Of a stretch of DNA of 64,000 nt, positions 30,578 to 56,918 are shown piece after piece. How positions within the stretch are numbered: position 1 is the first letter of the stretch; each line of letters opens with the position of its first letter. Origin of the DNA: Blastocystis sp. Blastoise (taxonomy: Eukaryota; Protista; Bigyra: Opalinata). Below the pieces are notes generated by a model that did no database searches, was not told where the DNA came from, and saw nothing but the letters and a program-made list of their open reading frames with translations. Where the stretch lies: the NCBI GenBank assembly GCA_039096225.1, contig JBBPEB010000026.1:248001-312000 (forward strand), written 5' to 3'. Both the position numbers and the translations under genes were made by a program.

Positions 30578-33308
30578 TCTACTATACAATAATTTATATA
30601 TAATTTATATTTATATATTATTATTAATTTCTATTATATTATTTATTAATATTATATAGATCACTTCCAAAACATTGTGTTCCTATATGGGGTCGTTTAT
30701 TGGCTGGATTATTAACGTATGTGAATACGGAAAGAGGGAAAAGCCTCGTCATCGAATTAGGTAACATTTTATTGGAGAATAAACACGTTCCAGAAGCACA
30801 TATATGCTATATTGTATATATATACTATTATATATTATATATATTATTATATGATATACTATTATATACTAGTATATTATATTATATTATTATATATATA
30901 TATAGTTAGGAGGAATAGAATTACAATCTTATACACAAAGTAGTAATTTCTGTTTACTTGGAACACAATTCGGAACTGGCTCCAAGCCTATAAATGAAGA
31001 ATCGCAATGGGCAACTGAAATATATGAATATATATTAACATTAAATAATCCATTATATATATCAAAATCACTTCTTCCTCATAAATTATTATATACAATG
31101 AAATTAATTGACTGGGGATATATTCAACTTGCTTATACATATATTAATTATATATATAATTATTATAATGATTATTATTATCATATTTATTATAATTTTA
31201 TTATATTGCTTGTTTTTATTATAATATTTATTGTTGAATCTTTATTATATTTATTATAATATGCTTTATATTAGAAATAACTTTATTTTATCTATAGATA
31301 TATTGAGAATATTCGAAAGATATTAAAGAATACAAGTAATAATCAAGCGACAGGGTTTATGAAGCAATTAACTGGACTTGAAACAAGACTCAATATTGCT
31401 ATTAAAGGACAAGAGTATATATATATGTATATAGTTTTATACTTATTATACTTTTTAGTATTCTAGACTCATTGTTATATATATATATATATTATTTTAT
31501 ACTTATTATACTTATTATCTATATATACATAGTTCAACTTCTTCTTCTCCTATGGATACTACAGTTCCCGCCAGTTCTTCCCGCTCTTTCTTTTCTTCTG
31601 TGTTTTCAACTATTGATAATGGTATTCAATCACTTGTTACGTCGGCTACAAAAGATGAACAATCACCTTGTATATAATAATAATAATATGTTTAATAATA
31701 ATAATAATATTTTATAATAATAATATATGTAATAATAGTATATTTAATAATAATATATATAATAATAATAATATTATATATACTTTATATATTATAGTAT
31801 CTGATACACCTACTCCCGCGGTTATGACTCCTGCTCTTTCTGCTCCTTCTACTTTAGTTACTCCTGTAAATAGTATTTCTGCTCCTAATACATTATATAC
31901 TAATAATAATATGAATATGAATAATATGAATATGAATAATAATATGAATAATAATATGAATATGAATAATATGAATATGAATATGAATATGAATATGAAT
32001 ACTATGAATATGAATATGAATAATATGAATATGAATAATATGAATAATGTGAATAATATGAATATAAATAATATAAATAATATGAATATGAATATGAATA
32101 TGAATATGAATTCTGTTGTGAGTAATACTAATAATACAGTTATAAATAATAATAATAATGCTAATCCACCTCTTCCTCTTCCTCTTCCTCTTCCTCTTCC
32201 TACCACTAAAAATCATCATTTCCCCACGGTTATGCAATCTCCTATTCAATCTACTAATCCTATTGGTCAGCAAAAAGATACTATTCCAGGAACACAATCC
32301 CCATCTGTCCAATCATTACCCACACCTGTTCCTGCACCCCTCTCTCCTAAATCAAGTAATTTCAAACGATATCAACCATCAACATCACATAGAGGATCTA
32401 CTGCGTATCGTCCCGCTCCTTTCCATCCCTCTTATTCAACCAATAGTATTCCTTCGCTACAAAACACAAATATTATGAATACAGAGAATAATTCTATTAA
32501 TAATAATGTTAATAATAATAATAATAATAATAATAGTACTAATATACCTCCTTCTTCATTCTCTTCTTCTCCTATTCCTTCTTCTCATGATAATAATTCT
32601 ATTAATAATAATAATAATAATAATAATAATGCTATAGATTCTATACCTTTGCCTAAATCTGATGAATCCCCGCGGGGAGTTCAGTTTATGTCTGTTCCTT
32701 CATCGTTAATACGTCAAAATATACCACTTACGGATAATAATAATAATGATAATGATAATATTAATAATACTAATAATAATGCTTCTACTACTACTACTAC
32801 TACTAATAATAATAATAATAATAATAATACTAGTAATAGTGAAACTACTGACAATAATAATAATAATGATAAGAATATTCAATCTTCTATTGCTACAAAT
32901 GGTCCTGCTTCTACAAAGAAACATCGACGTAAATATGATTTTGATGATGATGATGATTATGTTCCAAAGAGTAAACTGTCTCCATCAACAGGAAAGACTA
33001 ATGATAATAATAATAAAGATGATAATAAAGATAATAATAAAGATATTAATAAAGAAAAACAAAAAGAAGAAACAGAATCAAAGAAAGAAACAGAAACAGA
33101 AGAGAGTATATATATATTATTGTTTAAAATAGATACTATACTATAATTATGATTCTATAATTTTTATAGAGTCTATTTATTTATGATATATTATTATTGT
33201 TTATATCTCAATGAATATTATTATTATTATTATAATTATTATTATTTATATCTCAATGAATATATAAAAATTATTGTTATTTATATCTCTATAATATAAT
33301 AATAATTT

Positions 33309-34911: not shown

Positions 34912-36501
34912 TTAAGCTCTTCCCCATACTTCATAATCTTCTACTATAAAATTATTTCTAGAATTAGCATTATCAGTATTCACAAATAATGATAATTTTT
35001 GAGGAGTATTCATTTCTGCATGGCGTGTTGAATAGCAAAATGAATTATTATTATTATGGCACTGATCATATATACAGATACCTCCAAATAATGGCCCGAA
35101 AGGAGAACCACAACATATACCATTACTTTTTTTATTACTTATATAATCATATTTAGTAGGAGGAATATTATGTTCGTTACTTAATGTAAATAGAAACTCT
35201 TTTGAATAAGGTTTCCAACCTATATATATGATATTGAATATTTTTATAAAATAAATATACCACTTGAACTATCCCAATTTTGATCTGTATATCCTCCAAA
35301 TATATTAATATGATTATCATGACCTATATGTTTGATTAGAGTCACTGTTTCTCCTTTATTATCACAATATTTATGGAATTTACTTCCAGAATAATGATGT
35401 TCACTTGCTCTATATATATAATTATAAAATATAATAAAATAATAAATACCTATATAATAATTTCCATCTCTTTTTAGTACCAAGCCAATACACTAAGGGA
35501 GCTTCAAAACATCTTTTTTCAATTATCGTTGAATTTGTAAAAACAACTAAATTTCCACTCATATCTGAATTAGCAGCTTTTCTTCCTTTTTCACCAAATA
35601 ATTCAACCATTTCTTTCTCTAATAATTCTTTATCAATATTTTCATTATTTTTATCATCTTCTACAACATATAAACAGCCATTCTTTATATATTGAGTAAT
35701 ATATTCTATATATTCATATTGTTTATTCATATATAAACTTTCATCACTAGGATTATAATCAATAAAACCATTATCATAATTCTTAACATATTCATTCCAT
35801 AATCCATTCTTAACTAAATATTCTTTAATAATATCATTTTTGTTTCCATTAATAAATAAAGAAACTTCATCTCGTTTCTTATATTTCTTCATCTTTGTAT
35901 CTCTTCTTTCTCTACAATCTATTAATTCTATAGGAATTACTAATCCACAAAATTCAAATAAATCCAATATTTCTAATTGTTCTTCATAAGAAAAAGAATC
36001 AAAATTTACTTTCTTTCCATTCAAATAGTCTATTAAATAATAAATAAAAGCATCATTTCCAGGATAATCAAGAAATATAGATCCATCATTTGTTCTATAT
36101 TCTTCACCACGTTGTTCTTCAATAAAAGAACCTTTTAAAGAATCTAAAACAGATTTCGATATTTGAAAGATGGGACCATTATTTGTAAATCGAATAGTAT
36201 CCATTTTTTCATCATCACATTCATCAGGGTATCTACGTTTATTTTTATAATTATTCTCCACACTTTCTTCAGGAGAATCATCGAAAAAAGAAAAGTTACC
36301 AACTATTTTAGTTTTATTTTCACTATAATCATCTGCAATATGTTTTATAAGTCTATTAATCGACATTCCAGAATGTATACCAAGATTCATTACAGAAGAG
36401 AAAACATTAATAATATCTTTCATCAATTCTTCATATACATTGATATCCTCCTTCAATCTATTGAATTTATCAATACCAAATAGCATCTTTTCTTTCACCA
36501 T
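34912..36501 (-). CDS. BTB/POZ-like x2 + TLDc protein, 3 exons, intact (paralog A)
   Basis: Long exon 1 with KCTD-type BTB-like motifs (DGSIFLDY..YLIDYL..LFEFCGL). TLDc motifs WKLLYRAS, FHKYCDNKGETVT, FGGYT, FLFTL, GPLFG and YEVW. Confidence 0.88.
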
Positions 36502-38074
36502 TAATGAAATAATGCTAATTAAAAAAAATAATTTATTTCCCTTGTTTATTTTTGCTTTTACAAAAAAATCTTTTGTTTCTTTGTTATTCTCTTATTATTC
36601 ATATAGAATTATTAATATTATATTAAATAATTAGTATCCAATAGGATCTACAAAAATCTGCTAAGAATTCCTTAGAATAAAAAGTTTTTGTGGATCTTCA
36701 CTTCACCTATTACTTTAAATAGGTGATTGAATATTAATAAAAAATATAGATGATGCTAGAGACAGAATGACATGCTTAATTAGTATATATCTCTTGATTA
36801 TTTTTCATTTTGACTAATAATTCTTCTATTTTAAACATATATATTTCTATTTTTATTTATAATATATTTATACATTTATATCTGATAATTATTACTTATC
36901 CAGAGATGAATAGCTATATTTTCTACTTAATCATTCCTAATTTCTGACTGAATTTAATGAATTTTTATTTATTTTTATATCATATTTATGAAGTATATTT
37001 CCATTACTCATATAAAATCTCTTCTATAATCTTTATGTACGAAAATTTCTACTTTTATTTTTATCTTATTCTAATTATTCGTCCACTCCTATTTCACACT
37101 ATTTTATTCTCTTTATATTTTATAAAATAATTGATTAAGATATTCAAATTATCATATTTGTATAGATACTAAATTATCTATATGATGAATAATAACTATT
37201 TTTGATATTCTCTTCAAAGTTATTATTGATAATAAATACGTATTACATATATTTATGTCGATTGTCTATTAATAGAAAGATACATGAAAAAATAATATAT
37301 GGTTTTATTTTACCTATACATTGACCATAACTCTCTTTTAATATTTTATATTAAAAGATTATTTAATAATTATAATAATTTTAACATGAATTCAATCACG
37401 TAATATTTTGTTACTCTCATTGTTTTTTTATTAATAAAATATTTTTCTTGCCTATATATAGTACTACAATTATGCTTGCATTCATTAGTATTTATTTTTA
37501 GTTATATATATACTAATATCTCATTATAAACTATTATATATATTGAAAATGAAAAATGTGATTCATTAAATTATATATATAAATTATTTTATAACAATTT
37601 TTCAATAATAATTTTTTAAATATAAAGAATGTTATAAAAGAATTGTAAATTAAATGTGAAATAATAAAAAAAATTTTCTTCATACACTAATTATATGTTT
37701 TTTTAATAAAATCATGAAAGTTTCCTCTTTAATTATATACAAACAATTAAAATAAGATTTCTAGCCATGATTGAGGTTATCATTGTAATAATTAAAATTC
37801 TTTAAAGATATGTATATAGTTTACACTTCGTAGATATTATAACAATAAATTCATAATAAGTACAAAATAGATTTTATATATATATGTTGTATATATGTTA
37901 CTAAAATATATATTTTATTGAATCACTACTATTTTCTTTTTTTCAAATAAAACAAAAAAAAAAAACATTAAAATATATATATACTTCATAAAAATACAAA
38001 AAATAATTATGACAAGAAATTATAAAAAACCATGTTAACTAAAAATAAATATATATTCAAAGCATTTAATATAC

Positions 38075-42251
<4,177 letters not shown>

Positions 42252-42547
42252 GGTAGTAATTGAACTATACTAACATAATGAGTTCAAGAATCATATAAAA
42301 AAATAGGTATACAATAAATATAGGATAATTGATTCCTAAAAATTCACTGAAACTAATGAAATTAAAAGAGACTTATGAAAAATACAAAACAATTTAATAG
42401 TCAAATCTTTCGAATAAAACATGAAAAATAATGAAAAATCACTAACAAGATGTTTCATTCCTTAGATCAAATCTTTGCAAGTTTTAAATATTCTGTATTT
42501 AATAAAGAAAAAAACATTTTTTTTTATCATTTTAATCTCTTTTTACA

Positions 42548-44881
42548 ATGATAAAAGAAGGAATTTTATTTGACTTAGATTCTTTGAATCAAGTTAAAGA
42601 AGCTGTTAGTGGTTTAGATGAATTGATGAAGAAGATTACTGAAGGATTCACTTCTATCATTTCTTTGACTCTTTATTCTGGTCAAAAACTTCAAGGTGCT
42701 CTTAATAATCTAGATGATGATTGTGTTCAACGAGGAAGTGATAAATTCTCAAAATTGAAATATTTTCTTGATAATGCTCAGGGGAAAACTACTACAAAAA
42801 TAAATACGAGTAATATTAATGATACTGAACTTATTCGCTTCACTGGGAATGGCCCTCTATTTTCTTTATCGAAGAATATTATCAATTCGATTCCTTATTC
42901 CTATATTTATGAGCAATCTGAAGAAGTGTTGAGAACGAGTGATGGAAGTATTTTCCTTGATTATCGAGGAAACGATGCATCTGTTTATTATTTATTAGAT
43001 TACTTGAATTGTAAAGTTGTAGATTATAGTCAGATTGAGTCTCGAGAACAATTAAAGTTGCTTGAATTATTTGAATTTTGTAATTTACCAATTCCAATAG
43101 AATTATTAGAATGTAAAGAAATGAGAATTACAAAACAAATGAAGTTTAAAAAAGGTGATGAAGTGTCTCTATATATTAATGGAAATAAGTATGATATAGT
43201 TAAAGATTATTTAGTAAAGAATAATTTATGGGAGAATTATATAATGAACTATAAAAATGGATATGTTGATTGTGATTATATTCATGATATTATGTCTATG
43301 AATGTGAGCTATAAATATATGAAGTATATTACTGAATATATGAAAAGTGGTTATCTTTATATAAAGAAAGAAGAAATCAATAATATAGATATTAGCTTAT
43401 TAGAGAATGAAATGTATAGTATATTTGGTGATCAAGGGAAAAAAGCTGTTAAAACATATTTGAATGGAATACCAACTGTATTTACAGATTCAATGATAAT
43501 TGAAGAGAAATTTTTTGAAACCCAATTAGTGAATTTGTTAGGTAAAGAAAAGAAATGGAAATTATTATTTAGGTATGATTATTATTATACTGTTATTTAT
43601 TATCTATATCTATAGAGCAAGTGAACATGAATATAAAGCAAGTGAATTCCATAAATATTGTGATTATAAATGTCCTACTGTGACTCTTATTAAACATATT
43701 GGTCGTAATAATAAAATTAATATATTTGGAGGCTATACTAGTCAATATTGGGATTCCATAACTGAAAAAGGTATACAATATATATATATGACACTACTAA
43801 ATATACATGATTCTATATATAGAATATAAATATGATGATAAATCTTTCTTATTTACATTAAGTAATGAACATAATATTCCTCCTTCTAAATATGGTATAC
43901 TAGATCCTTATAATGCATTATATTGTAATAAAATAAGTGGTCCTGATTTTATGAATATATGTATTAGTGACGATTGTCATAATAATGAGAATAGTTTTAT
44001 TAATGAACGAACTGGTATATATTCTCATAGTTTTATTCCTCAATCTGCATCTTTATTTGTGAATACAGCTGGACCAAATGAGTCTAATTATTTTACTGTT
44101 GATGAATATGAAGTATATGAATTAATTCCAAAATCTGATTTATATTTACCAGATTCAATTCTTGTTACTAAAGAAATGGGTATTAAGTTAAGTAATTGGT
44201 TTGATGAAGATAAAGAATGGGAATTATTATATAGGTATATTCTATTATTTTTTATATTATTTATATGTTTCATATATTCATTATATTCTTATTATATAAT
44301 AATAATAATTATTATATATAGATGTTCTGATGAGAATAGAAGTGTAAAGAAATGGCATGAGAAATGTGATGATAAAGAATCATTAGTGATTATACAAGGA
44401 AAAGGAAAAGATGGTCAATCTTATATATTTGGAGGATATACTAGTGTTGGCTGGGGAAAGAATCATATAGATGAAATAGATGAATATGATAGTATATATA
44501 TTATATGAAATATATATATATATATATATTTCTTTAGAAAGTATAGGATGTAGAATAGATTCAAAAGCCTTTTTATTTTCATTAACAAATCCTCATGGAC
44601 ATAATTATACTAAATTAAATATTAATCCTGAAAACTCAGAATGTGCATTAATTAGTAATAATTCTAATTGTGAACTCATATTTCTTAATGGTATATATTT
44701 AAGGACTAAGAGTGATGATGATCAATTTTTAGATGGTAGAAGTAGATATTTATGTAGTAATGATCCAGTATATATATCTCCTTATCCTGAATTAGGAAAT
44801 AGTTTCTTTGTTAATACTAATAAACCTGATAAGGATAATATCTTTGATTTAATTGATTTTGAAGTATTTACAAGCATATAA
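42548..44881 (+). CDS. BTB-like x2 + two tandem TLDc domains, 5 exons, intact (paralog B)
   Basis: 355-aa first ORF is homologous to paralog A. TLDc1 runs WKLLFRAS..FGGYT..EYEVY and TLDc2 runs WELLYRCS..WHEKCD..FGGYTSVGW..AFLFSL..DFEVF. Confidence 0.88.
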
Positions 44882-45432
44882 GAATATATGATGTGTATTC
44901 TATTCTTATTTTTTAAATATATTTTTAAATAATTATTATATATAATTTTTTCTATTCATATTAAAGTGTATATATCGTTAATAAAAAAAAATTTATGTAT
45001 AAATTATATATATATGTTTTATCTTATATTTATTTGTTTCTGTTTTCGTTATTATATAATATATACTATTTTTGTATACTATTTTATTATAGTATTAATT
45101 GTTTTTTTACTTTATTCTTATTAGAATATATTATTTTTTTTAGTATTATTAACATTACAATGTAGTAACATTTTTTCTTTAATAATAATTATCTATTATA
45201 AAATATTATATATTAAATAAAATGTCTAGATATCTTTTTTATGATAACAGTGATATGCAATTCTATTATATATGTCACAATTACTAAACATATAAGAAAC
45301 AACATAAATGAAAATTGATTATAAAAAAGTAATAACTTCTAATATAAATATAAAAAACAAGAAATATATATTTTCAGAGTATTTCAAATAGATTCATTCA
45401 TATAATAGAATATAATAGATATATAATATATA

Positions 45433-47021
45433 TTAAACTCTTCCCCAAACTTCATAATCTTCTACTTTAAAGTAGTTCTTTTTATTTGGACGAGCAGTAT
45501 TAACAAATAAGGATGATTTTTGAGGAGTATTTATCCATGTGAAAGAAGAAGCTTTTGTATATACATATTCATTTCCAGTATCACATCCATCATCTAATGT
45601 AATATCCCTACCATCTCCAAATACAGGACCCCAAGAAGAAGAACAACATATACCACAACCATTACCATTATGTAGATATTGAGTAGGAGGAATACCATGT
45701 TCATTACTTAAGGTAAATATAAATTCTTTAGAAGCAGGTTTATTACCTATTGAAAAGAATATAGAATATTTATATATATGGATTGTCATATATACAGTTG
45801 TTTCTTCTAGATTCCCAACTTTGATCTGTATATCCTCCAAATATACTAATATGATTATTATGACCTATATGTTTGATTATAGTCACTGTTTCTCCTTTAT
45901 TATCACAATATTTATGGAATTCGTCTCTTCAATAATTATGTTTACTTGCTCTATATATATAATTATATAATATAATAAAATAATAAATACCTAAATAATA
46001 ATTTCCATTTCTTTTTAGTACCAATCCATTTCATTAAGGGAGTTTCAAAACATCTTTTTTCAATTATTTTTGAATTTGTAAATACAGTTGGGTTTCCCAT
46101 CATTTCTTCTGTCACAGCTTCTCTTCCTTTATCACCAAATAATTCATTCATTTCTTTATCTAATAATTCTTTATTAATATCATTAATCATATCTTCTTCT
46201 ATATCTATAGTTCCATTATTCACATATTCAGTAATATATTCTATATATTCATATTTCTTATTCATATAAAAACCTTTATCTATAGGTTTATAATTAATAA
46301 ATCCATTATCATAATTCTTAACATAATTATTCCATAATTCATTCTTTACTAAATAATCTTTAATAATATCATTCTTTTCTCCATTAATAATCAAAGAAAC
46401 TTCATCATCTTCTTCATATTTCTTCATCTTTCGATCTCTTCTTTCTCTACAAGCAACCAATTCTATAGGAATTACTAATCCACAAAATTCAAATAAATCC
46501 AATATTTCTAATTGTTCTTCATAAGAAAAAGAATCAAAATCTACTTTCTTTCCATTCAAATAATCTAATAAATAATAAATAAAAATATCATTGCCTCTAT
46601 AATCAAGAAATGCAATTCCATCATTCGTTCTTTTTTCTTCTTCACGTTGATCATCTATAAAAGAACCTTTCAAAGAATCTAAAACAGATTTCGATATTTG
46701 AAAGATGGGACCATTATTCGTAAATCGTATCAAATCCATATCATTATCATCATTAGTATTCATATTGACATTCATATCTTCATTATTATTATTTTCATAA
46801 ACACATTTCTTTTCAAATTCATCACTTTCACCTTCTTGTTCAATACAATCATTTCCAATATGTTTTATAAGTCTATTAATCGACATTCCAGAATGTATAC
46901 CAAGATTCATTACAGAAGAGAAAACATTAATAATATCTTTCATCAATTCTTCATATACATTGATATCCTCCTTCAATCTATTAAATTTATCAATATCAAA
47001 TAACACCTTTTCTTTCACCAT
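45433..47021 (-). pseudogene. BTB-like x2 + TLDc (paralog C) with an in-frame TGA in exon 2
   Basis: Close paralog of A. Exon 2 reads RASKHNY*RDEFHKYCDNKGE (TGA = complement of 45929-45931); the downstream frame is open and conserved. Confidence 0.75.
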
Positions 47022-47695
47022 TTCTAAGGAAAAAAGAAAACAAACACTTTGTAACTCCTCAAGAGAATTTTGTTTTTACACCGTTCTTCATACACTTTAC
47101 CGTAAATCTAATTTTTTTTTGTATTTTTTTTGTATTATACCTTCTCTAAAGAATTGCAATTCATATAGTAAATTGCTAATTAATGATAATATGTATATTC
47201 GTAAGAGTTTGATTATATGGAAGAAACACTCTTTGAGAATGGGTATTAGAAATTAAATATGAATATCTCCAGCAATAAATATGGTTCAAAATATCTGATT
47301 ATGATATAAACTTTATTATATTTCAAATTTAAACATCAGTGAATGTTTTCATCTATCGTTTCTAAAATAATCTTTAAAATGAATAACTAAATAACATGCA
47401 TTGTCTGAAAAAGCATTATATAGTATTGAAACGATTATTTGAATCATTATTTATTTTAATATTATGATAAAAAGGCAATAATTAAATTGATTGTACTTTT
47501 TAGTTTATAGAATAAACAGAAATATACATATGTACAACTAATACATTATATACATATACAGTTGAAACTGAAAACGAAGATTGATTATAATAATAATATA
47601 GAGTATAATAATAGAATGAATAATGTTCGTTTTATTACAAATTGGAGAATATCATAATATATAAAAGAATATGAACATATATATATTATAAAAAG

Positions 47696-50600
47696 TTATA
47701 TTGTAGCATTTGAAGGAATAAGATTTGTTTTCATATTTGTTTCTGTAGAATGCTCATATTGTTGTTTTGATAGCATCTGTACTTCAGAATTCTTTCTAGA
47801 TTGAGCTATTAAAACATTTTTGACGGTATAATGTTCACCATTGAGTCGAGGAACACGATGAGAATGATGTCTCTTTCTAGAGAATAAATAAGATAGATTT
47901 TAGATCCTATAATAAGAGCGAATATATATATAGAATATATACATAATGATGACAATACTACAAAGAGTAATAAACACGAGACAGCTTATTAAAATAATAA
48001 TAATAAATGTATTATCTTTAGGAGGAGAAGGTTTATATGTTGTCTTATGTATGCTTCCAAGGACATCCACTATATATAATATAGCATTATAGATATATAG
48101 TAGATAATATTAATTATGAATAAATGAATTATTTATTATGAATAAATGAATATTTTACAAAAAAGTCATAAAATCATTAAATAATAAATAATAATAAATA
48201 GAATAATAAATAGAATATAAATAGAATAATGAATATAAAAATAAATAGAATAATAAATAATATATAAATAGAATAATAAATAGAATAATAAATAGAATAA
48301 TAAATAGAATAATAAATATAATACTATATCTATACAATGACAAGCACTTGTAGGAGTGGCTATCCCAATTCGATCATGTTCTTTATCAAAAATAGTTGTA
48401 AATGCTCTCATCATAGTAGCGCCAAATACATTTGCATCCTATTTATATGAAACATATATATACAATTAAAAGCAAAAAATATTAAAAAAAAAATTTTATT
48501 ATCCAAAATAAAAAAATAAAATTTTTTATTATCCAAAATAAAAAATAAAATTTTATTATACAAAATAAATTATATACTAAGCCATGATGTCCAATATCTC
48601 TGATTCCAAAACAATAATAATTTGTATTATTTTCAGTATATTTCAAAAAATAGACTTCTGGTGAAAGAGAAAGATATACTCCATTAAGGTATATATCTAA
48701 TGTTGGCCATTCAGAAGAAGGAGGATCATCTAAGCATTCATCTGAGAATATATTTGGTTTATCACAAACATCTGTATAGAATAGATATATATACTATCAA
48801 AAAATATAAAATATAGATAATGAATAAGATATATATGTTATTAAATATATATATTCTTAACATGAATAATTTTTAAAAAATAAAGGAAATAGCATATATA
48901 TATAATTAAAAATGAAATAATACAAAACAATAGATATAGAAAACAATATACAAGGAAGATGACAATAATTCGTCTGAAAGTAGTTTTTAATGGAATTAAA
49001 GAGATCAGTTTGAAGTAAAATTAGAGTAGTACCAATATCAAATAGAGTATATAAAGGTTCCTAAATATAGATAATGAGCAATGAAAGTAGTGTAATTGTA
49101 TTATACAATAAAAACAAATACATACATAATATATAATGAAAATATATTACATATATACATACATTCAACAGGAATACAGATTTGCCATTTATTCTAAAAT
49201 CATTCACTTCTAAAGTATAATAACCATCTAAAAATATATCTATCCATGTAATATTACCAGTCTATAGGTATTTATATAGTATTATAATAAATATAAGTAA
49301 AAGCAAAAGGATAATAAATATTTTGAGTATTATTTAGTGTGTATATAAAATATGTTATTATAAACAAAAATAGAATAGTGTCGTATAGCATTTTTGAACA
49401 TATATATAAATAAATCAAAGAAATTATGTTATAAATGAATGAATATAATTATATACATAAAGATCTTCATCAATTCCTCCATATGAAAGAACTCCTTTTG
49501 TATTTCCAAAACATATTGTAAACATACTCTTTGTTCCATTTATATTTTTAATCATTGAATCAAAATAATTATCAAAGCAAGAAGGATTACAGAACTTTTG
49601 ATAACTCAAACCTAAAAGGCCATCAGAACTATCTATACTACCATAGGCAGACCTATATGAATATAATATTATATATAATAAATAAAATAATTATTAAATA
49701 ATAATTATTAAATAATAATTATTAAAAATAATTATTAAATAATAATTATTAAAAATAATTATTAAAAATAATTATTAAATAATAATTATTAAAAATAATT
49801 ATTAAATAATAATTATTAAAAATAATTATTAAAAATAATTATTAAAAATAATTATTAAAAATAATTATTAAAAATAATTATTAAATAATAATTATTAAAT
49901 AATAATTATAAAAAATAATTATTAAATAATAATTATTAAATAATAATTATTAAATAATAATTATTAAAAATAATTATTAAATAATAATTATTAAATAAAA
50001 ATAAAAACGATAAATATATACTCTAAATAGCCAACATAAATAGGAAATGAAGGAGACCATCCTGTTGTTGTTTGAATCATAATATTCTCTTGAATCATAC
50101 TTCCATAGGCTCTATAAAATAATAAAGAATAATAAAAGAATTATAATAAATAGTATACTAAAAAATAAAAATGTAAGAAATATAATAAATAATAATAAAT
50201 ATATTTATATACGAATGTTGTGATATAGTGCCAAAACTAAATCCACAAAGAGATTTATTATTTTTTGCACAACAAGCATTTGTTGATGCATGACAATCAC
50301 CAGCACAATCACTAGTTGTACAAGTATCTATATATATAATTATATAATTATAAATAATTAAAATAAATTCTTAATAATTATAAAACACAATATATATATA
50401 TATGTATTGAAAAATAAAACATCACATAATAAGTATACTTGGAGTACATAGAGAGCTGCCACAGCTTATCGGAACCATAGTTGTAGAATTGTTCATATCA
50501 TAGGGATTTGAAGAAGCCTAATTTAATTAGTAATTTGATATTTAATAATTGTATACATGACTACATCCAGAACATGTCTTAGCGTTTAAATAGCTGACAC

Positions 50601-50844
50601 CATTAGCTAATTCCTAAAGAAGATATTATTACTCAATGTTATGTAGATCGTTACCAGAAACATCTTTGCTGGATTTTTTTGAGATCCAACTGTGATATCG
50701 ATGTAGTATAGTCCATGAACAATATTGCCGCTTAGATCGCTTTTTATTAAGGTCGAAGCCTATTAAACAATTAGACTAACCTAATTCTTATATTACTTGT
50801 AGTTCAACAAGAAAAAGGGCAGATATCAATATCAAAAAACGCAT
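47696..50844 (-). CDS. Pepsin-family (A1) aspartic protease homolog, type I membrane, probably catalytically inactive; multi-exon
   Basis: Signal peptide MRFLILISALFLVELQA, then YYIDITVG, SDGLLGLS, FTICFG..GVLSYGG, DIGTT, YCFGI, VFGATMMRAFTTIFD..RIGIA, and a C-terminal TM. The first DTGS motif reads ELAN. Confidence 0.85.
49687..49995. repeat. Tandem array of an 11-12 nt unit containing the palindrome AATAATTATT, in an intron
   Basis: (ataattattaaaa / ataattattaaata)n seen directly. Confidence 0.9.
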
Positions 50845-51697
50845 TTCTGAACAATCAAATAGTGTATAAAATAAAACTATTTTTATATCTTATTTTTTAT
50901 CAACAATGACAAAAAGATTTCGTCCTTTTTCTGTACATTATTGGGATACCTATATTTGTCATTCAGGTGCACACAATAACAATTCGCTCCGTAAAAAAAT
51001 GATCGAAATTTCCATGAAACCTTATCTTATTTTACTCAAATTTTTTAAAATTCCTAAAAAAGATTTTTTCAGTATTCAAATCCACAGTACCCAATTTCTT
51101 TAAGAGGATTCTCATTTATAGGTTTTCTAAATAGCTTCATACTTCATGAGTATTATTTATAATTCATACTGATCATAGTAAGACAGAAAGCTTGTATTGA
51201 AACCAAAATAAAAGAGGCAAATTGGTGTGTTATCTCTTATCGTGTATCATAGATTGTTTAAAATATACTCTATATGAAGTATTAATACTATTCAAGATAT
51301 ACCTTGAATGAAGAGAATACAATATACATATATTTTTGTTTTTGAAATTAATTTTTGAAAATGTGAGTTAGTCTTTGTTTTTTACTATTCGGATATAAGA
51401 TAAAATATCTTGTGCATTATAAAAGGAATTGATAGATCTGTAGAAGAACATGAATTAGGGATAGTGAAACAAATACTTGTAGATTATACGTTTTAGCTTC
51501 CATAAATAAAACAGTCAAGTGTTGCTTCATATAAATATAAATTTTTATAAAATTCATACAGAAGATAAGAAATGAATAATAGATAGAAAGATTGTTTGCA
51601 TAAAAAATAAATTTTTAGCTAAAAATACGAAAAAACTACGGTAATAGAGTTATTTTGATACATTTCTTGTTTATTGTGAACACAGAAACTATTTATA

Positions 51698-53933
51698 ATG
51701 GGTATAAGGGGTTTAACTAAGTTTGTGTCTGATAACATCACGAAATTCTCATCAAAACCGTAAGTTTCTGGTTTCTTTAGGTCAATTTCTATAGAAGAGG
51801 CATCTCCATACCAGTTATTGTTGATGGGAATGCCTTGAAGCATTTCACATATCATCATCTAGATAAGTCAAGTCCTGATTCATGTGATATTGCTGTTTAC
51901 GAGTACTTATATGATTTTTTTATGAAGTTAAATCATCTAAAAATTAACGTGAATTGTATATTATTTGATGGAATGATTGTAGAAAGCAAATTCAACACTA
52001 TTTTAAGTCGATCGAAAGATACAATGAAGGAAAGTATCAAATATTTTAATCAATTTGATGGCCAAAGTAGGGTTTATTATATTTATTTTTCACTAAAAAA
52101 AATGAAATATTATTATATATAGAAAGTCCAACAACATTCGCATGTAATTTTCAAAAGGTTATTCTACAGTTAAGTACTGCTTCTCCTTTCAACTTTGAGG
52201 TTATAGTATCTTCAGATGATGCAGACAAGTATATATTAAATGAAGAACGATAATATTAAAATAATAATTATAGGCAAATTGCAACTTATGCAAATAAAAA
52301 TAAATGTTATGTAATCAGTGAAGACAGTGATTATTATATTTATAATATTCCAGGATATATTCAACTCTCTTCGATTTCTAAATTAATAAATAGAAAAAAT
52401 TGTATGTTAAATAATAATAGTATTAATCATATACTCTATAGTAGAAAGACAATCTGTATATGCCTATAATTCACGGTTATTTGCTAAATATTATAATATT
52501 CATCCATGGTCACTTCCTTTATTTGGTGCTCTTGCAGGCACAGATACTTATAAATGCTGTTTCCCTAGACAACAATCTTGTAGTATCTATATATTATTTT
52601 TTATATATATTTTTTAATTTATATTTTTATAACTTATATTTTTGTTATTTTTCTTATTATTATGGCTTTATTTTTTTTTAATCATATTATTATAACTTTT
52701 ATATTATAGTTATTATTTATATTTTTTTTACTTTAGTTATTTATTATTATTATTATTATTTTTTTTTATTTCTCATCATATTTATAACTTATATATATAT
52801 ATAGATAATTTGAGTACTATTTTAGAGATAATGTCTGAATATCAAGATGATGATGATGAATTATATAAACATATTTTTCATACAGAAAATATCGCTATTA
52901 AAGACATTGAAAATGATGTATATATATATTATTATTATTATTTCTTTTAAACAATATTTTTTTTTTCTTATTGATATATAATTATTCTTATAGTTTAGTG
53001 AGAATATTGTTTTAATCAATATATATATATAGCTTCTAAAAGGAAAAGAAGAGTTTTCTATTTCTAAATATGATTATATATATCCGAATTGTATTATTCC
53101 TATGGCATATATTGGCGATAAACAAAAAGAAACCATTTTAGAATTAATCAAAAACCCATGTATATATATATATATATATATATAATTTTTATTATATATT
53201 TATGTATTTTCGAAAATTATTCCTTCACATATATATAATATATTATTAGTTATATATTGTGGATTATATATTATATATTATATATATAGATTGTTCACGA
53301 ATTTTAGAGTATATGAAAACAGGTGTAATTCCTTCCAAATTTACACATTTCATTTTCCACGGGATTTTAAACTTTTCTATTCCACGATTAGAAGATCAAG
53401 TACATACATTAGAGACTATAAACTTTATTGAAGTTTTATGTAACAAAATGATTAAGCAATATATGAAAACATACCGTCCCAAATATCAATTTTTTAGTTT
53501 AAATACAATTAACGATATAATTCTAGATGAAACTAATATTATAAGGTATATATATTATACTCTATATTATATATTTTATTATATATTATGTATATTATAT
53601 TATATATTCTATATTATATATTTTATTATGTATTATTTATAGTATATTATATATATTCTATTATATATTCTATTTTTTATATTCTATATTCTATATTCTA
53701 TATTCTATATTTTATTATATATTATGTATCTTATATTATATATATTCTATATATAGAATAGATAGGTGTTTAAATGATATGTCAATTAATTATATGAACA
53801 TTAATTCATCAATAAATGAAATGACTACATTATTAGGTATTGAAACATTTATAACGGACACAAATAGTTATATATATACACATATCATTGACGTCAATGC
53901 TGTACTTGCATTACTGTATATATATATATATTT

Positions 53934-54013
<80 letters not shown>

Positions 54014-54976
54014 CATTCAATTATTCTATAATCTTTTTTTTTTTTAATTTTTATAATAGTATTATCATTATTGTTCTTGTACTTATATAGATTTCTATAC
54101 AAAAAACAACCTCAATATAACCGTAATTATTTTATTTCTGTTCTTACAGCTATATTCTCTGAACACGATCATGATAATAATCGCGGTTATTCTCCTAATC
54201 ATCATGAAAACACTTCTAGTGAAGGTATATATATATTTATATGTTATTATAATCAGATTTATTTTTTATATTATAAGTTTTTATTATATATATATTCTAG
54301 TTATTTATGAACCAGAAATAAAGAATTTTGTTCATCCTCCTCAATCTATTGATAAATCACTTCTTATTTTCTATCAAGATTATCAAGTATATATATGTGT
54401 TTATTACAATTATATATATATATATATTACTATTATATATAATATATTTTATAATATTTAATATTATTATTATAGTATATCTTATCATGTATAACCATTT
54501 TAAGCAGTTATTTCTATTGCTTCAAAGAAACTCGTCAAGTATATATTAAATATATAATACATATAATATATATATATATAGTCTATTTGTTTCGATTATG
54601 TATCACAAATATATTATTCTATTCAAAGAGGGTATATATAATATAATATTATATATATAATATATATATATATAGTATTTATGAATCTCATTCTTCTTAT
54701 CTTAAAAGTAAAAGTGAATACAATTCTATTATGAAGAAAATCACTATTTCTTCTTCTTCTTCTTCTTCTAGATTATATTCAACACGTGCTTCTCCTTCTT
54801 CTTCTTCTATTTCTTCTTCTACGGCTTCTTCAATACCTTCAACACGTGCTTCTCCTTCTGTTTCTATGCCTCGTTATGTATATTCACCACCTCAATATTC
54901 CTCTTCTACAGAATCATATTCTCAATATTATCCTTCTCCAGAATCATCATCATCATCTATTTGTTCTACTATGTAA
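51698..54976 (+). CDS. ASTE1: Asteroid/ASTE1-like XPG/FEN1-type PIN nuclease, multi-exon
   Basis: MGIRGLTKFV start; after intron 51760-51794 come IVDGNAL, ILFDG, SSDDAD, CYVISEDSDYYIY and LFGALAGTD. Ser-rich C-terminal exon ends at 54976. Confidence 0.82.
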
Positions 54977-55196
54977 TTCTATATACTATTATTTATATAT
55001 ATAAATATATTCATATAGATATTGTTTTATTATTATTAAATATTATTTTAAAACTAAACAACTAGTTATAGAAATAATCAATTAATAAATAAATACATTA
55101 TATATATAAAAACACAATAGAATGACAAATATAATTTAAAAAAAAAACAAAAATATTTAAAAAACAAAAAACAAAATCTATTTTCAAATAAAACAA

Positions 55197-56918
55197 TTAT
55201 AATCTACCCCAAACTTCATAATCATAAACCTTAAATTCATTTGCTTTATTCGGTTTATTCGTATTTACAAATAATGAACTCTTTTGATTTGTATTGACTT
55301 CACCATAATGAGTAGCTGAACATTTCGCAGAAACATCGTTCTTATTACTCGTAAATATTGTTATATCTGAAAGATTACCAAAACAAGGACCAGCTCCTGC
55401 ATTACAATATATACCACAACTTCTATCACTGCTTGTATATTCATATTTAGTAGGAGGAATATTATGTTCATTACTTATAGTAAATATAAATTCTTTAGAA
55501 TGCCATTTAGAAACTATACATATAATAGTATATATATATGTATATATATATGTATATATATATGTATATATATACTTGGATAATTTTCCCAATCTTGATC
55601 TGTATATCCTCCAAATATATTAATATAATTATCATGACCTATATGTTTAATTAAAGTTACTGTTTCTCCTTTATAGTACAATATTTATGGAATTCACTTG
55701 CTTTATAATTATGTTCACTTGCTCTATATATGTATTTATTTATAATGAAAAAAAATAAATATTGATTTATAATGAAAAATATATATATATATTTATAATG
55801 AAAAAATATAAATATTTATTTATAATGAAAAATATATTTTATTATTTTATAATGAAAAATATATTTATTTATAATGAAAAAATATATATATACCTAAATA
55901 ATAGTTTCCATCTTTTTTCCTCACCTAACCATTTCACTAAGGGTTTTTCATCTGTTGAATCTAATATTTTAGAATGTCTAAATACATAATTCGATTTCCA
56001 ACCTTTTTTAACGATATTTTTCCCTATATCTCCGAATATACTATACATTTCTTTTTCTAAATTTTCTCTATTAATATCATAAGTTTCACTTTCAAAAATA
56101 TATATACAATTATTAATAATATATTCATTTATATAATCAATATATTCATAATTTATCTTCATATATTCCTTATTTTCTATTTTATCATAATCAATATATC
56201 CATTATTATAATTATTTACATAATTATTCCAAATTCCATGTGATTTACAATATTTCTTTATAATCTCATTCTCTTGATTATTTATATAAAGTACAACATT
56301 ATCAGCATTATTACATTTCTTTATATTTTCTCTTTGTATTTGAATCTTAGTTAATTCTTCTGGAAGTGGTAATTCACAAAATTCAAATAAATCTAATAAT
56401 TGTAATTGATCCTTTATTTTCAATTGATCTATATTAATTACATTATTCATTAGAGAATCTATAAGTAATGGAGCACAAGAATCATCAAAAGGATAATCTA
56501 AATATATAGAGCCATCAGTAGTTCTTCGATCTTTTTGAGACTGTTCATATAAATAAGTTCCAACTAAACTATTCGTAATTGTTTTAGGAAGAGAATGTAA
56601 AACACCACCACTGTTAAAACGAATATAATCGGTATCGTTCTGACTAGTATTGATGTTCATGAAATCAGTAGAATTATCTTGAAAAGAAGATTCTTGGACA
56701 AGAATATCTGAATTATTATTTTTGTTTTCATCAATTTCGGTATTAGAACGTAGGTAGTGGCTTAGCAATCCATTTATTGAATCACCTGAATGAATACAGA
56801 AACTAATAGACTTTCCTAAGATTCCAATCAAATCACATATCAATGCTTCAAAGTGAATCACATCATTCTGGATATCAGATGTCTTCCCAGAATCAAACTC
56901 CACATTATTCTTTACCAT
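55197..56918 (-). pseudogene. BTB-like x2 + TLDc (paralog D) with a 1-nt frameshift in exon 2
   Basis: Exon 2 reads TGT ACT ATA AAG GAG AAA CAG TAA, where paralogs have C-D-(Y/N)-K-(G/C)-(E/P)-T. Restoring one G between 55678 and 55677 gives CDYKGETVTLIKH..FGGYTDQDW. Confidence 0.75.

Follow-up and report, generated by a model that had tools for sequence, protein, structure and literature searches.

Co-amplified BTB-TLDc and BTB-repeat gene families in Blastocystis sp. Blastoise: a candidate repertoire of adaptor or recognition proteins

In the genome of the protist Blastocystis sp. Blastoise, five BTB genes, four of which continue into TLDc domains, are clustered between positions 34,912 and 56,918 of a 64,000-nucleotide stretch (positions 248,001 to 312,000 of contig JBBPEB010000026.1, forward strand; hereafter the window). 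We consider it probable, at roughly 60%, that these genes are one local instance of a genome-wide module in which two gene families have been amplified together, and that the two families constitute a repertoire of multivalent adaptor or recognition proteins. The first family, F1, is that of genes A to D and joins a double BTB region to one or two TLDc domains; the second, F2, is that of gene E and joins a BTB domain to a series of repeats. The folds, the copy number, the structure of the module, the decay of copies and the unevenness of constraint are established, and the repertoire function is what these observations would suggest. An earlier note on this DNA had described a cluster of five genes, which is accurate locally, though the families run to hundreds of loci across the genome.

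The genes and their parts are listed here in window coordinates.

34912..36501, minus strand: gene A, an apparently intact F1 gene of three exons, annotated as the 502-aa hypothetical protein WA158_004287 (P0001)
36316..36474, minus strand: N-terminal long helix of gene A, aa 10-62 in the AlphaFold2 model
35893..36210, minus strand: BTB unit 1 of gene A, aa 98-203, predicted KCTD/T1-type fold
35557..35892, minus strand: BTB unit 2 of gene A, aa 204-315, predicted T1/BTB_2-like fold
34915..35556, minus strand: TLDc domain of gene A, aa 316-502, with two introns; a variable patch, aa 416-440, lies within the last exon
38075..42251, minus strand: gene E, of family F2; its short 5' exon is followed by one BTB-like and one low-complexity exon and then by about 16 small ones
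41903..42173, minus strand: BTB/T1-like domain of gene E, homologous to F1 unit 1 (hhalign)
38219..41485, minus strand: repeat region of gene E, about 16 exons with one repeat of about 30 aa each, LRR-like (leucine-rich repeat) but unproven as such
42174..42547, no strand: divergent spacer between E and B, 374 bp, which also contains the short 5' exon of E and is conserved as DNA
42548..44881, plus strand: gene B, of the double-TLDc subfamily of F1, four exons, apparently intact
45433..47021, minus strand: gene C, F1, convergent with B, with an in-frame TGA at 45929-45931
55197..56918, minus strand: gene D, F1, divergent, a probable pseudogene

Both families extend far beyond the window. In the genome scanned (33.3 Mb in 34 contigs, with a guanine-cytosine (GC) content of about 22%), the first exon of gene A has at least 117 matches (116 of 275 candidates scored), the first exon of gene E has at least 147 (of 240 candidates), many of them with stop codons, and the Pfam TLD cut-off is passed by at least 156 matches (of 346 candidates); a genome-wide family count had been among the checks proposed in the earlier note. 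To our knowledge, other eukaryotes have far fewer TLDc genes than this. The genome preprint describes isolate Rus-B, from a Russian tortoise, with 33.3 Mb in 33 scaffolds, 23.1% GC and 8,547 genes; the terms "TLDc" and "BTB" are both absent from its main text (PMC10690189). A literature search likewise found no paper tying Blastocystis to BTB families.

On the two contigs counted, the members of the two families lie close to one another more often than chance would have it. On contig C3, an F2 match falls within 7 kb of 12 of the 17 F1 matches, where about one would be expected (about 6% per F1 locus), and on contig C23 the same holds for five of eight, both being hand counts. Moreover, the spacer between the divergently oriented genes E and B recurs at 12 other junctions where F2 and F1 genes stand head-to-head, with 73-77% identity, over 313-374 bp at 11 of them and over 317 bp at the twelfth, all with an expect value (E) of 1e-40 or less; counting the window's own, there are 13 copies, and wherever both neighbours were scored the copy is flanked by the first exons of an F2 gene and a B-type F1 gene, one on either side. 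Convergent pairs of B-type and C-type genes, with starts 3.36-3.63 kb apart, were found at eight loci. The order in the window, A(-) E(-) <> B(+) >< C(-), accordingly represents the canonical module, and D is a lone divergent copy. The arrangements that appear to recur are an F2 gene head-to-head with a double-TLDc F1 gene over a conserved spacer of about 360-375 bp, a single-TLDc F1 gene in convergent orientation, and an F1 gene in tandem on the downstream side of F2; modules would duplicate as units, and the copies would afterwards diverge, shed introns and decay. In this respect F1 and F2 may be compared with the paired head-to-head nucleotide-binding leucine-rich-repeat (NLR) genes of plants, which are likewise arranged in divergent pairs and duplicated as such, match a protein with repeats to a partner that has the same oligomerisation domain, and undergo birth and death. 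Unlike plant NLRs, F1 and F2 have neither NB-ARC nor TIR domains, and the likeness is an analogy only.

The four F1 genes of the window share a single exon-intron plan at their 5' ends. Exon 1 is uninterrupted over 349-359 codons (the open reading frames, which include read-through into the intron, span 35422-36501 in A, 42548-43615 in B, 45963-47021 in C and 55869-56918 in D). It ends in ...LL(Y/F) followed by AG|GT, a GT..AG intron of 40 to about 170 nt follows, and the reading resumes at AG|A GCA AGT; in all four genes, then, one and the same arginine codon is interrupted by a phase-2 intron. The earlier claim that four paralogs have a common first exon of about 350 aa and an identical intron position in an Arg codon is borne out by this reading of the splice sites, while its extension to the family does not hold, since among 30 fetched F1 loci intron 1 is missing in about nine and both introns are missing in about five. 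Wholly intronless F1 paralogs (L007, L008, L009, L010, L030) consist of one open reading frame of about 490-555 codons, others retain one or both introns, and about 22 of the 117 genomic matches to exon 1 of A have open frames of at least 490 aa, i.e., are intronless. Such mixed intron states point to repeated intron loss or to RNA-mediated copying within F1. Intron 1 of A, B and C measures about 40-43 nt and is free of repeats, in contrast to the introns of E (e.g., 41482-41643), which are packed with long (TA)n and (TATATA)n microsatellites. Upstream of the cluster, at 31668-33146 of the window, lies a long low-complexity open reading frame rich in Asn and Met.

Two of these four genes are intact in appearance and two are damaged. 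With the 502-aa product of A as the tblastn query, three exons could be placed in A, C and D, and in B a first TLDc was followed by a second, weaker one; when B was compared with the 702-aa double-TLDc paralog P0101, all four exons aligned at 62-83% identity and without stops. In C, the TGA at 45929-45931 sits in the first TLDc exon, and the deposited 472-aa model (P0004) avoids it by means of a longer intron, at the cost of the start of the TLDc domain. In D, 1 nt is missing from the first TLDc exon near 55671-55677, immediately past the Cys codon at 55678-55680; the shifted frame runs into a TAA at 55657-55659, and we therefore regard D as a probable pseudogene. C and D are thus damaged in the same exon by independent lesions. 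Together with stops in 22 of the 117 genomic matches to exon 1 of A, the damage to two of the four window copies supports the view of the earlier note that the family is subject to birth and death.

The assignment of the C-terminal domain to TLDc is straightforward. The product of A passes Pfam PF07534 at 68.4 bits against a cut-off of 24.5, and even single exons score above it (31.5 bits for the last exon of C, 29.6 for that of D and 27.7 for the second TLDc of B). Genes B, D and E were searched one exon at a time. An AlphaFold2 model of the A product, built on 48 family members, has a mean predicted local distance difference test score (pLDDT) of 80.9, with values of about 90 within domains, and a Foldseek search with this model retrieved the solved TLDc domains of NCOA7, OXR2, TBC1D24 and mEAK7, with a best E of about 1e-7 and a template modelling (TM) score on the target of about 0.73 (matches 8ar6, 4acj, 6r82 and 7obp: E 1.6e-7 to 2e-5, probability 1.0, target TM 0.6-0.74). 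That exon 1 is followed by one TLDc domain, or by two in B, was therefore correctly read from the outset. F1 shares this domain with the known TLDc proteins, among them OXR1, NCOA7, TBC1D24/Skywalker, mEAK7 and yeast Rtc5p. In those proteins the domain is fused to LysM/GRAM, TBC or EF-hand-like modules, unlike the BTB region that precedes it in F1.

In the AlphaFold2 model, the region encoded by exon 1 has a long helix at residues 10-62, from which a disordered linker (59-97) leads to two compact alpha/beta units; a separate model of residues 98-315 reached a pLDDT of 90.8. In the structural comparison with VIA-align, unit 1 (residues 1-106 of the 98-315 model) matched the BTB domain of KCTD5 with Z 10.4 and a root-mean-square deviation (rmsd) of 3.1 over 94 aligned residues, and over KCTD5, 13, 17, 10, 9, 15 and 16 together with the T1 domains of Kv channels it gave Z 9.4-10.4 and an rmsd of about 3 Å, with about 95 of 100 residues aligned; the values for KCTD5, 13, 17, 10, 9 and 16 are Z 9.6-10.4. 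Unit 2 was barely probed by the VIA-align list, and its fold rests on a separate ESM Atlas model of the protein, in which residues 209-315 have query TM scores of 0.58-0.64 to clusters bearing BTB_2 (KCTD4, Kv channels and cnidarian BTB_2-TLD proteins), as well as on BTB_2 matches in distant paralogs. By ESM Atlas language-model features, ten of the ten nearest clusters are BTB_2. Both units are accordingly modeled with the BTB core fold of three strands and five helices; the earlier note had proposed two KCTD-like BTB units in exon 1 and had named structure prediction as a check, and a BTB fold is what the prediction returned.

Sequence profiles reach the same assignment by way of more distant members of the family. 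Among the close members, sub-threshold Pfam BTB_2 matches occur in just 5 of 45. Distant paralogs in the same genome give significant BTB_2 scores at the position of unit 1 (P0125, 40.7; P0148, 31.4; P0165, 30.7) and at that of unit 2 (P0160, 33.0; P0135, 27.7), P0158 has two BTB_2 stretches and is significant at the unit-2 position as well, and the family profile connects these distant paralogs with the genes of the window, E ranging from 1e-4 to 1e-13. A two-unit profile searched against PDB sequences found a weak match to the BTB domain of Kelch13 (E 0.2). Alignment of unit 1 with unit 2 in hhalign gave the expected register at a value that is not significant (E 0.25), so that a recent internal duplication is not demonstrated by sequence, though both are T1-type folds. 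Weak Pfam matches to Mo25, PUA_3 and EELM2 were treated as chance, as was a sub-threshold HeLo match (18.3 bits against 23.2) in the metagenomic relative P0145, which has a long helical N-terminus.

F1 units 1 and 2 thus appear to have the same fold as the KCTD and Kv T1 domains (PF02214). F1 differs from KCTD proteins in that two tandem T1-type units stand behind a long helix, in that the C-terminus is a TLDc domain and not the KCTD C-terminal domain, and in that the window genes score below the Pfam threshold. In two paralogs the neighbouring modules are others: in P0100 (WA158_000619) the double-BTB region is followed, in place of TLDc, by an immunoglobulin-like He_PIG domain of Pfam, and P0162 (WA158_000431) has an N-terminal PRA1 domain; each is either a real module swap or a fused gene model.

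A BTB fold of this type invites the explanation offered in the earlier note, namely that these proteins are substrate adaptors of Cullin-3 ligases, in which the BTB domain docks on Cul3 and the TLDc domain or the repeats select substrates. The best structural matches of unit 1 are indeed KCTD BTB domains, including KCTD5 and KCTD7 chains solved with Cullin-3 (8u80, 8i79), and a cullin-homology locus is present in the genome. However, the T1 domains of K+ channels, whose entry titles name no cullin, match equally well, and unit 1 is about as close to Skp1, a partner of Cul1-type SCF ligases and not of Cul3. Several KCTD proteins, moreover, are not known to bind Cul3. The cullin locus (C15:290059-291924) was the only one found in a six-frame Pfam scan of the whole genome, and its N-terminal exon has no match in PDB sequences or NCBIfam. 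A T1 fold is found both in Cul3 adaptors and in proteins without that role, and we regard a Cullin-3 function as unlikely.

Gene E supplies the second half of the module. Its 5' exon begins with an ATG at 42251 and is spliced to an exon starting near 42173, which encodes the BTB-like domain and is highly conserved over 20 aligned paralogs. In hhalign, the first 90 residues of this exon match F1 unit 1 at 90.2% probability (E 1.5e-6, 88 columns); the N-terminal similarity of E to F1, which the earlier note had pointed out together with the difference in the C-terminus, is therefore real homology, and the tail of E consists of repeat exons. Fifteen exon-sized pieces of E align as a repeat of about 30 aa, in which a helix precedes an FPxLKxφxφ-like strand, and the position of the donor GT inside the last codon of the exons inspected suggests that the repeat exons are separated by phase-1 introns. 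Exons homologous to these repeats were found about 3 kb from other F2 first exons, and a search for intronless F2 copies found none. It is plausible from their pattern that the repeats are LRR-like; in the label "BTB + LRR-like" that the gene had been given, the first term is confirmed and the second is plausible.

Close relatives of these genes were found only in the genome at hand. A word search with the first exon of A returned 99 matches, all 99 from the Blastoise genome and all of the named ones hypothetical proteins, and neither word nor profile searches found a close relative outside it. The F1 family profile reaches 77 clusters among 1.84 billion representatives, and distant relatives with the same BTB-BTB-TLDc layout occur in ENA, Logan and NCBI metagenome assemblies, on contigs of about 39-43% GC. 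One of these, P0158 (likewise on a metagenome contig of about 39-43% GC), is 59% identical to the conserved member WA158_000014; the alignment of P0158 with gene A covers both BTB units and extends as far as the WKLLYR motif at the intron site. The architecture is therefore older than the expansion, and the term "lineage-specific", which had been applied to the cluster, would hold for the expansion and not for the architecture, given these metagenome relatives and the BTB and TLDc fusions of cnidarians and insects. Insects have BTB-BACK-TLDc proteins (Bombyx Bmmp, Drosophila CG7102), described as one gene per species (bioRxiv 10.1101/2021.07.26.453796), and an ESM Atlas cluster of cnidarian proteins carries BTB_2 in 100% and TLD in 100% of its members. 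In both groups BTB is N-terminal to TLDc, as in F1. The insect proteins have a classical BTB with BACK, whereas F1 has a double T1-type BTB, massive amplification and a pairing with a BTB-repeat family; no BACK match was obtained in any Pfam scan of F1, and a second T1-type unit fills the position between BTB and TLDc.

How selection has acted on the F1 protein was examined in codon alignments of 26 intact A-type paralogs, with Nei-Gojobori counts pooled over 13 independent pairs. The pooled ratio of nonsynonymous to synonymous differences per site (pN/pS), the absolute value of which is inflated by the compression of synonymous divergence at third codon positions that are 86% A/T, is 0.19 for the N-terminal helix, the most constrained part in the A-type clade, 0.38 for BTB1, 0.50 for BTB2 and 0.72 for the linker; within TLDc it is 0.42 in the N-terminal half and 0.70 in the C-terminal half. 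In sliding windows the ratio peaks at residues 416-440, with values of 1.1-2.0. Within this patch, which was picked after inspecting the data, there are 127 nonsynonymous and 21 synonymous differences (pN/pS 1.57), as compared to 1457 and 662 in the rest of the protein (0.48), a difference with a Fisher p of 4.5e-6 and, against neutrality, a binomial p of 0.025.

In the wider family of 48 members, conservation is greatest in the first TLDc exon, and the entropy of TLDc does not exceed that of the BTB units. As read from these alignments, the pattern would be one of uneven constraint with a local hotspot in TLDc, and not of a constant adaptor beside a hypervariable TLDc. The comparison of TLDc with BTB by dN/dS that the earlier note had proposed thus found constraint that differs by domain (0.19-0.70) and not uniform purifying selection. 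Its picture of strongly variable, fast-evolving TLDc domains may apply to the patch at 416-440, while TLDc overall is conserved no less than the BTB units; by the same token, its notion of a common adaptor module with interchangeable, fast-evolving C-termini is upheld as regards the BTB module common to the TLDc genes and E, and fails as regards the general pace of TLDc evolution.

These data bear on the possibility that the F1 proteins are regulators of the vacuolar ATPase (V-ATPase), like other TLDc proteins, that they have expanded along with the large central vacuole of Blastocystis, and that their BTB domains merely give multivalency. The closest solved TLDc structures include those of NCOA7B, mEAK7, Oxr1 and Rtc5p bound to V-ATPase or V1 (7uzg, 7u4t, 7fde, 9nn1); the suggestion of V-ATPase binding comes, by analogy, from the entry titles of these structural neighbours. 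More than 100 diverging paralogs with a variable TLDc patch, however, fit poorly with one conserved target, and a role at the V-ATPase would leave the co-amplification with F2 unexplained. We hold this explanation to be quite improbable.

The same data bear on a second possibility, that the array is mostly non-adaptive and arose by segmental and tandem duplication, perhaps with RNA-mediated copying, in a gene-poor expanded genome, where copies drift and decay and have no repertoire function. The stops in F1 and F2 matches, the two broken copies in the window, the existence of intronless copies and the fairly high pooled pN/pS of 0.4-0.7 would all be expected of such an array. Yet in most copies a frame of about 500 codons has stayed open while the amino-acid sequences diverged by 25-60%, the N-terminal helix and BTB1 are clearly constrained (0.19-0.38), and the divergent spacer is conserved at a dozen junctions outside the window. 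A mostly non-adaptive origin therefore strikes us as very unlikely.

We return to the reading of the two families as a repertoire of multivalent adaptor or recognition proteins. In the F1 protein, a long helix at the N-terminus would be joined by a disordered linker to a tandem pair of KCTD/T1-type BTB domains, with one or two TLDc domains behind them; lacking an obvious signal peptide, the protein is probably cytosolic. The F2 protein would consist of one BTB domain homologous to unit 1 of F1 and about 16 exon-sized, LRR-like repeats of about 30 aa. T1-type BTB domains may bring about oligomerisation, possibly in mixed F1/F2 assemblies since the two families share a homologous BTB unit, and the TLDc domain and the repeats may serve as target-binding heads. 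Among recent paralogs, change appears to be fastest in a patch on the surface of the C-terminal TLDc half. Together, the families would provide a large repertoire of such proteins.

Several points weigh against this reading. The window genes fall below the Pfam BTB_2 (PF02214) cut-off, their best score being 14.2 bits (unit 2 of A) against 21.4. No significant LRR match was found for the F2 repeats, for which Pfam is blank exon by exon and a search of the repeat profile against PDB gives weak matches only (2ra8, E 0.027; ANP32A, E about 5). Oligomerisation, co-assembly of F1 with F2 and target binding are drawn from domain families only. No sequencing run on record as RNA holds the region; a single run matched 15% of the words, and it is not on record as RNA. 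Pseudogenes are numerous among the copies, and some of the family may therefore be functionless. Finally, the composition of third codon positions makes the absolute pN/pS ratios unreliable, and the hotspot was chosen with the data in view.

A more elaborate form of the idea would have F1 and F2 proteins join by their homologous T1-type BTB domains to form sensor/executor complexes, expressed from shared bidirectional promoters, as a fast-turnover recognition repertoire resembling innate immunity; the TLDc head would act on the V-ATPase and central vacuole, or on the ubiquitin pathway, once the repeat partner engages a viral, bacterial or selfish-element ligand. We give this scheme very little credence in its full extent.

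If the broader reading of a co-amplified adaptor or recognition repertoire is true, a single undescribed pair of families, amplified together and built on a shared oligomerisation domain, would account for a few per cent of the gene complement of a gut-dwelling protist, which stands at roughly 8,500. It would also represent a new and unusually large expansion of TLDc proteins. As such, Blastocystis sp. Blastoise may offer a tractable case for the origin of cytosolic recognition and adaptor repertoires in microbial eukaryotes, and for the question of what TLDc domains recognize.

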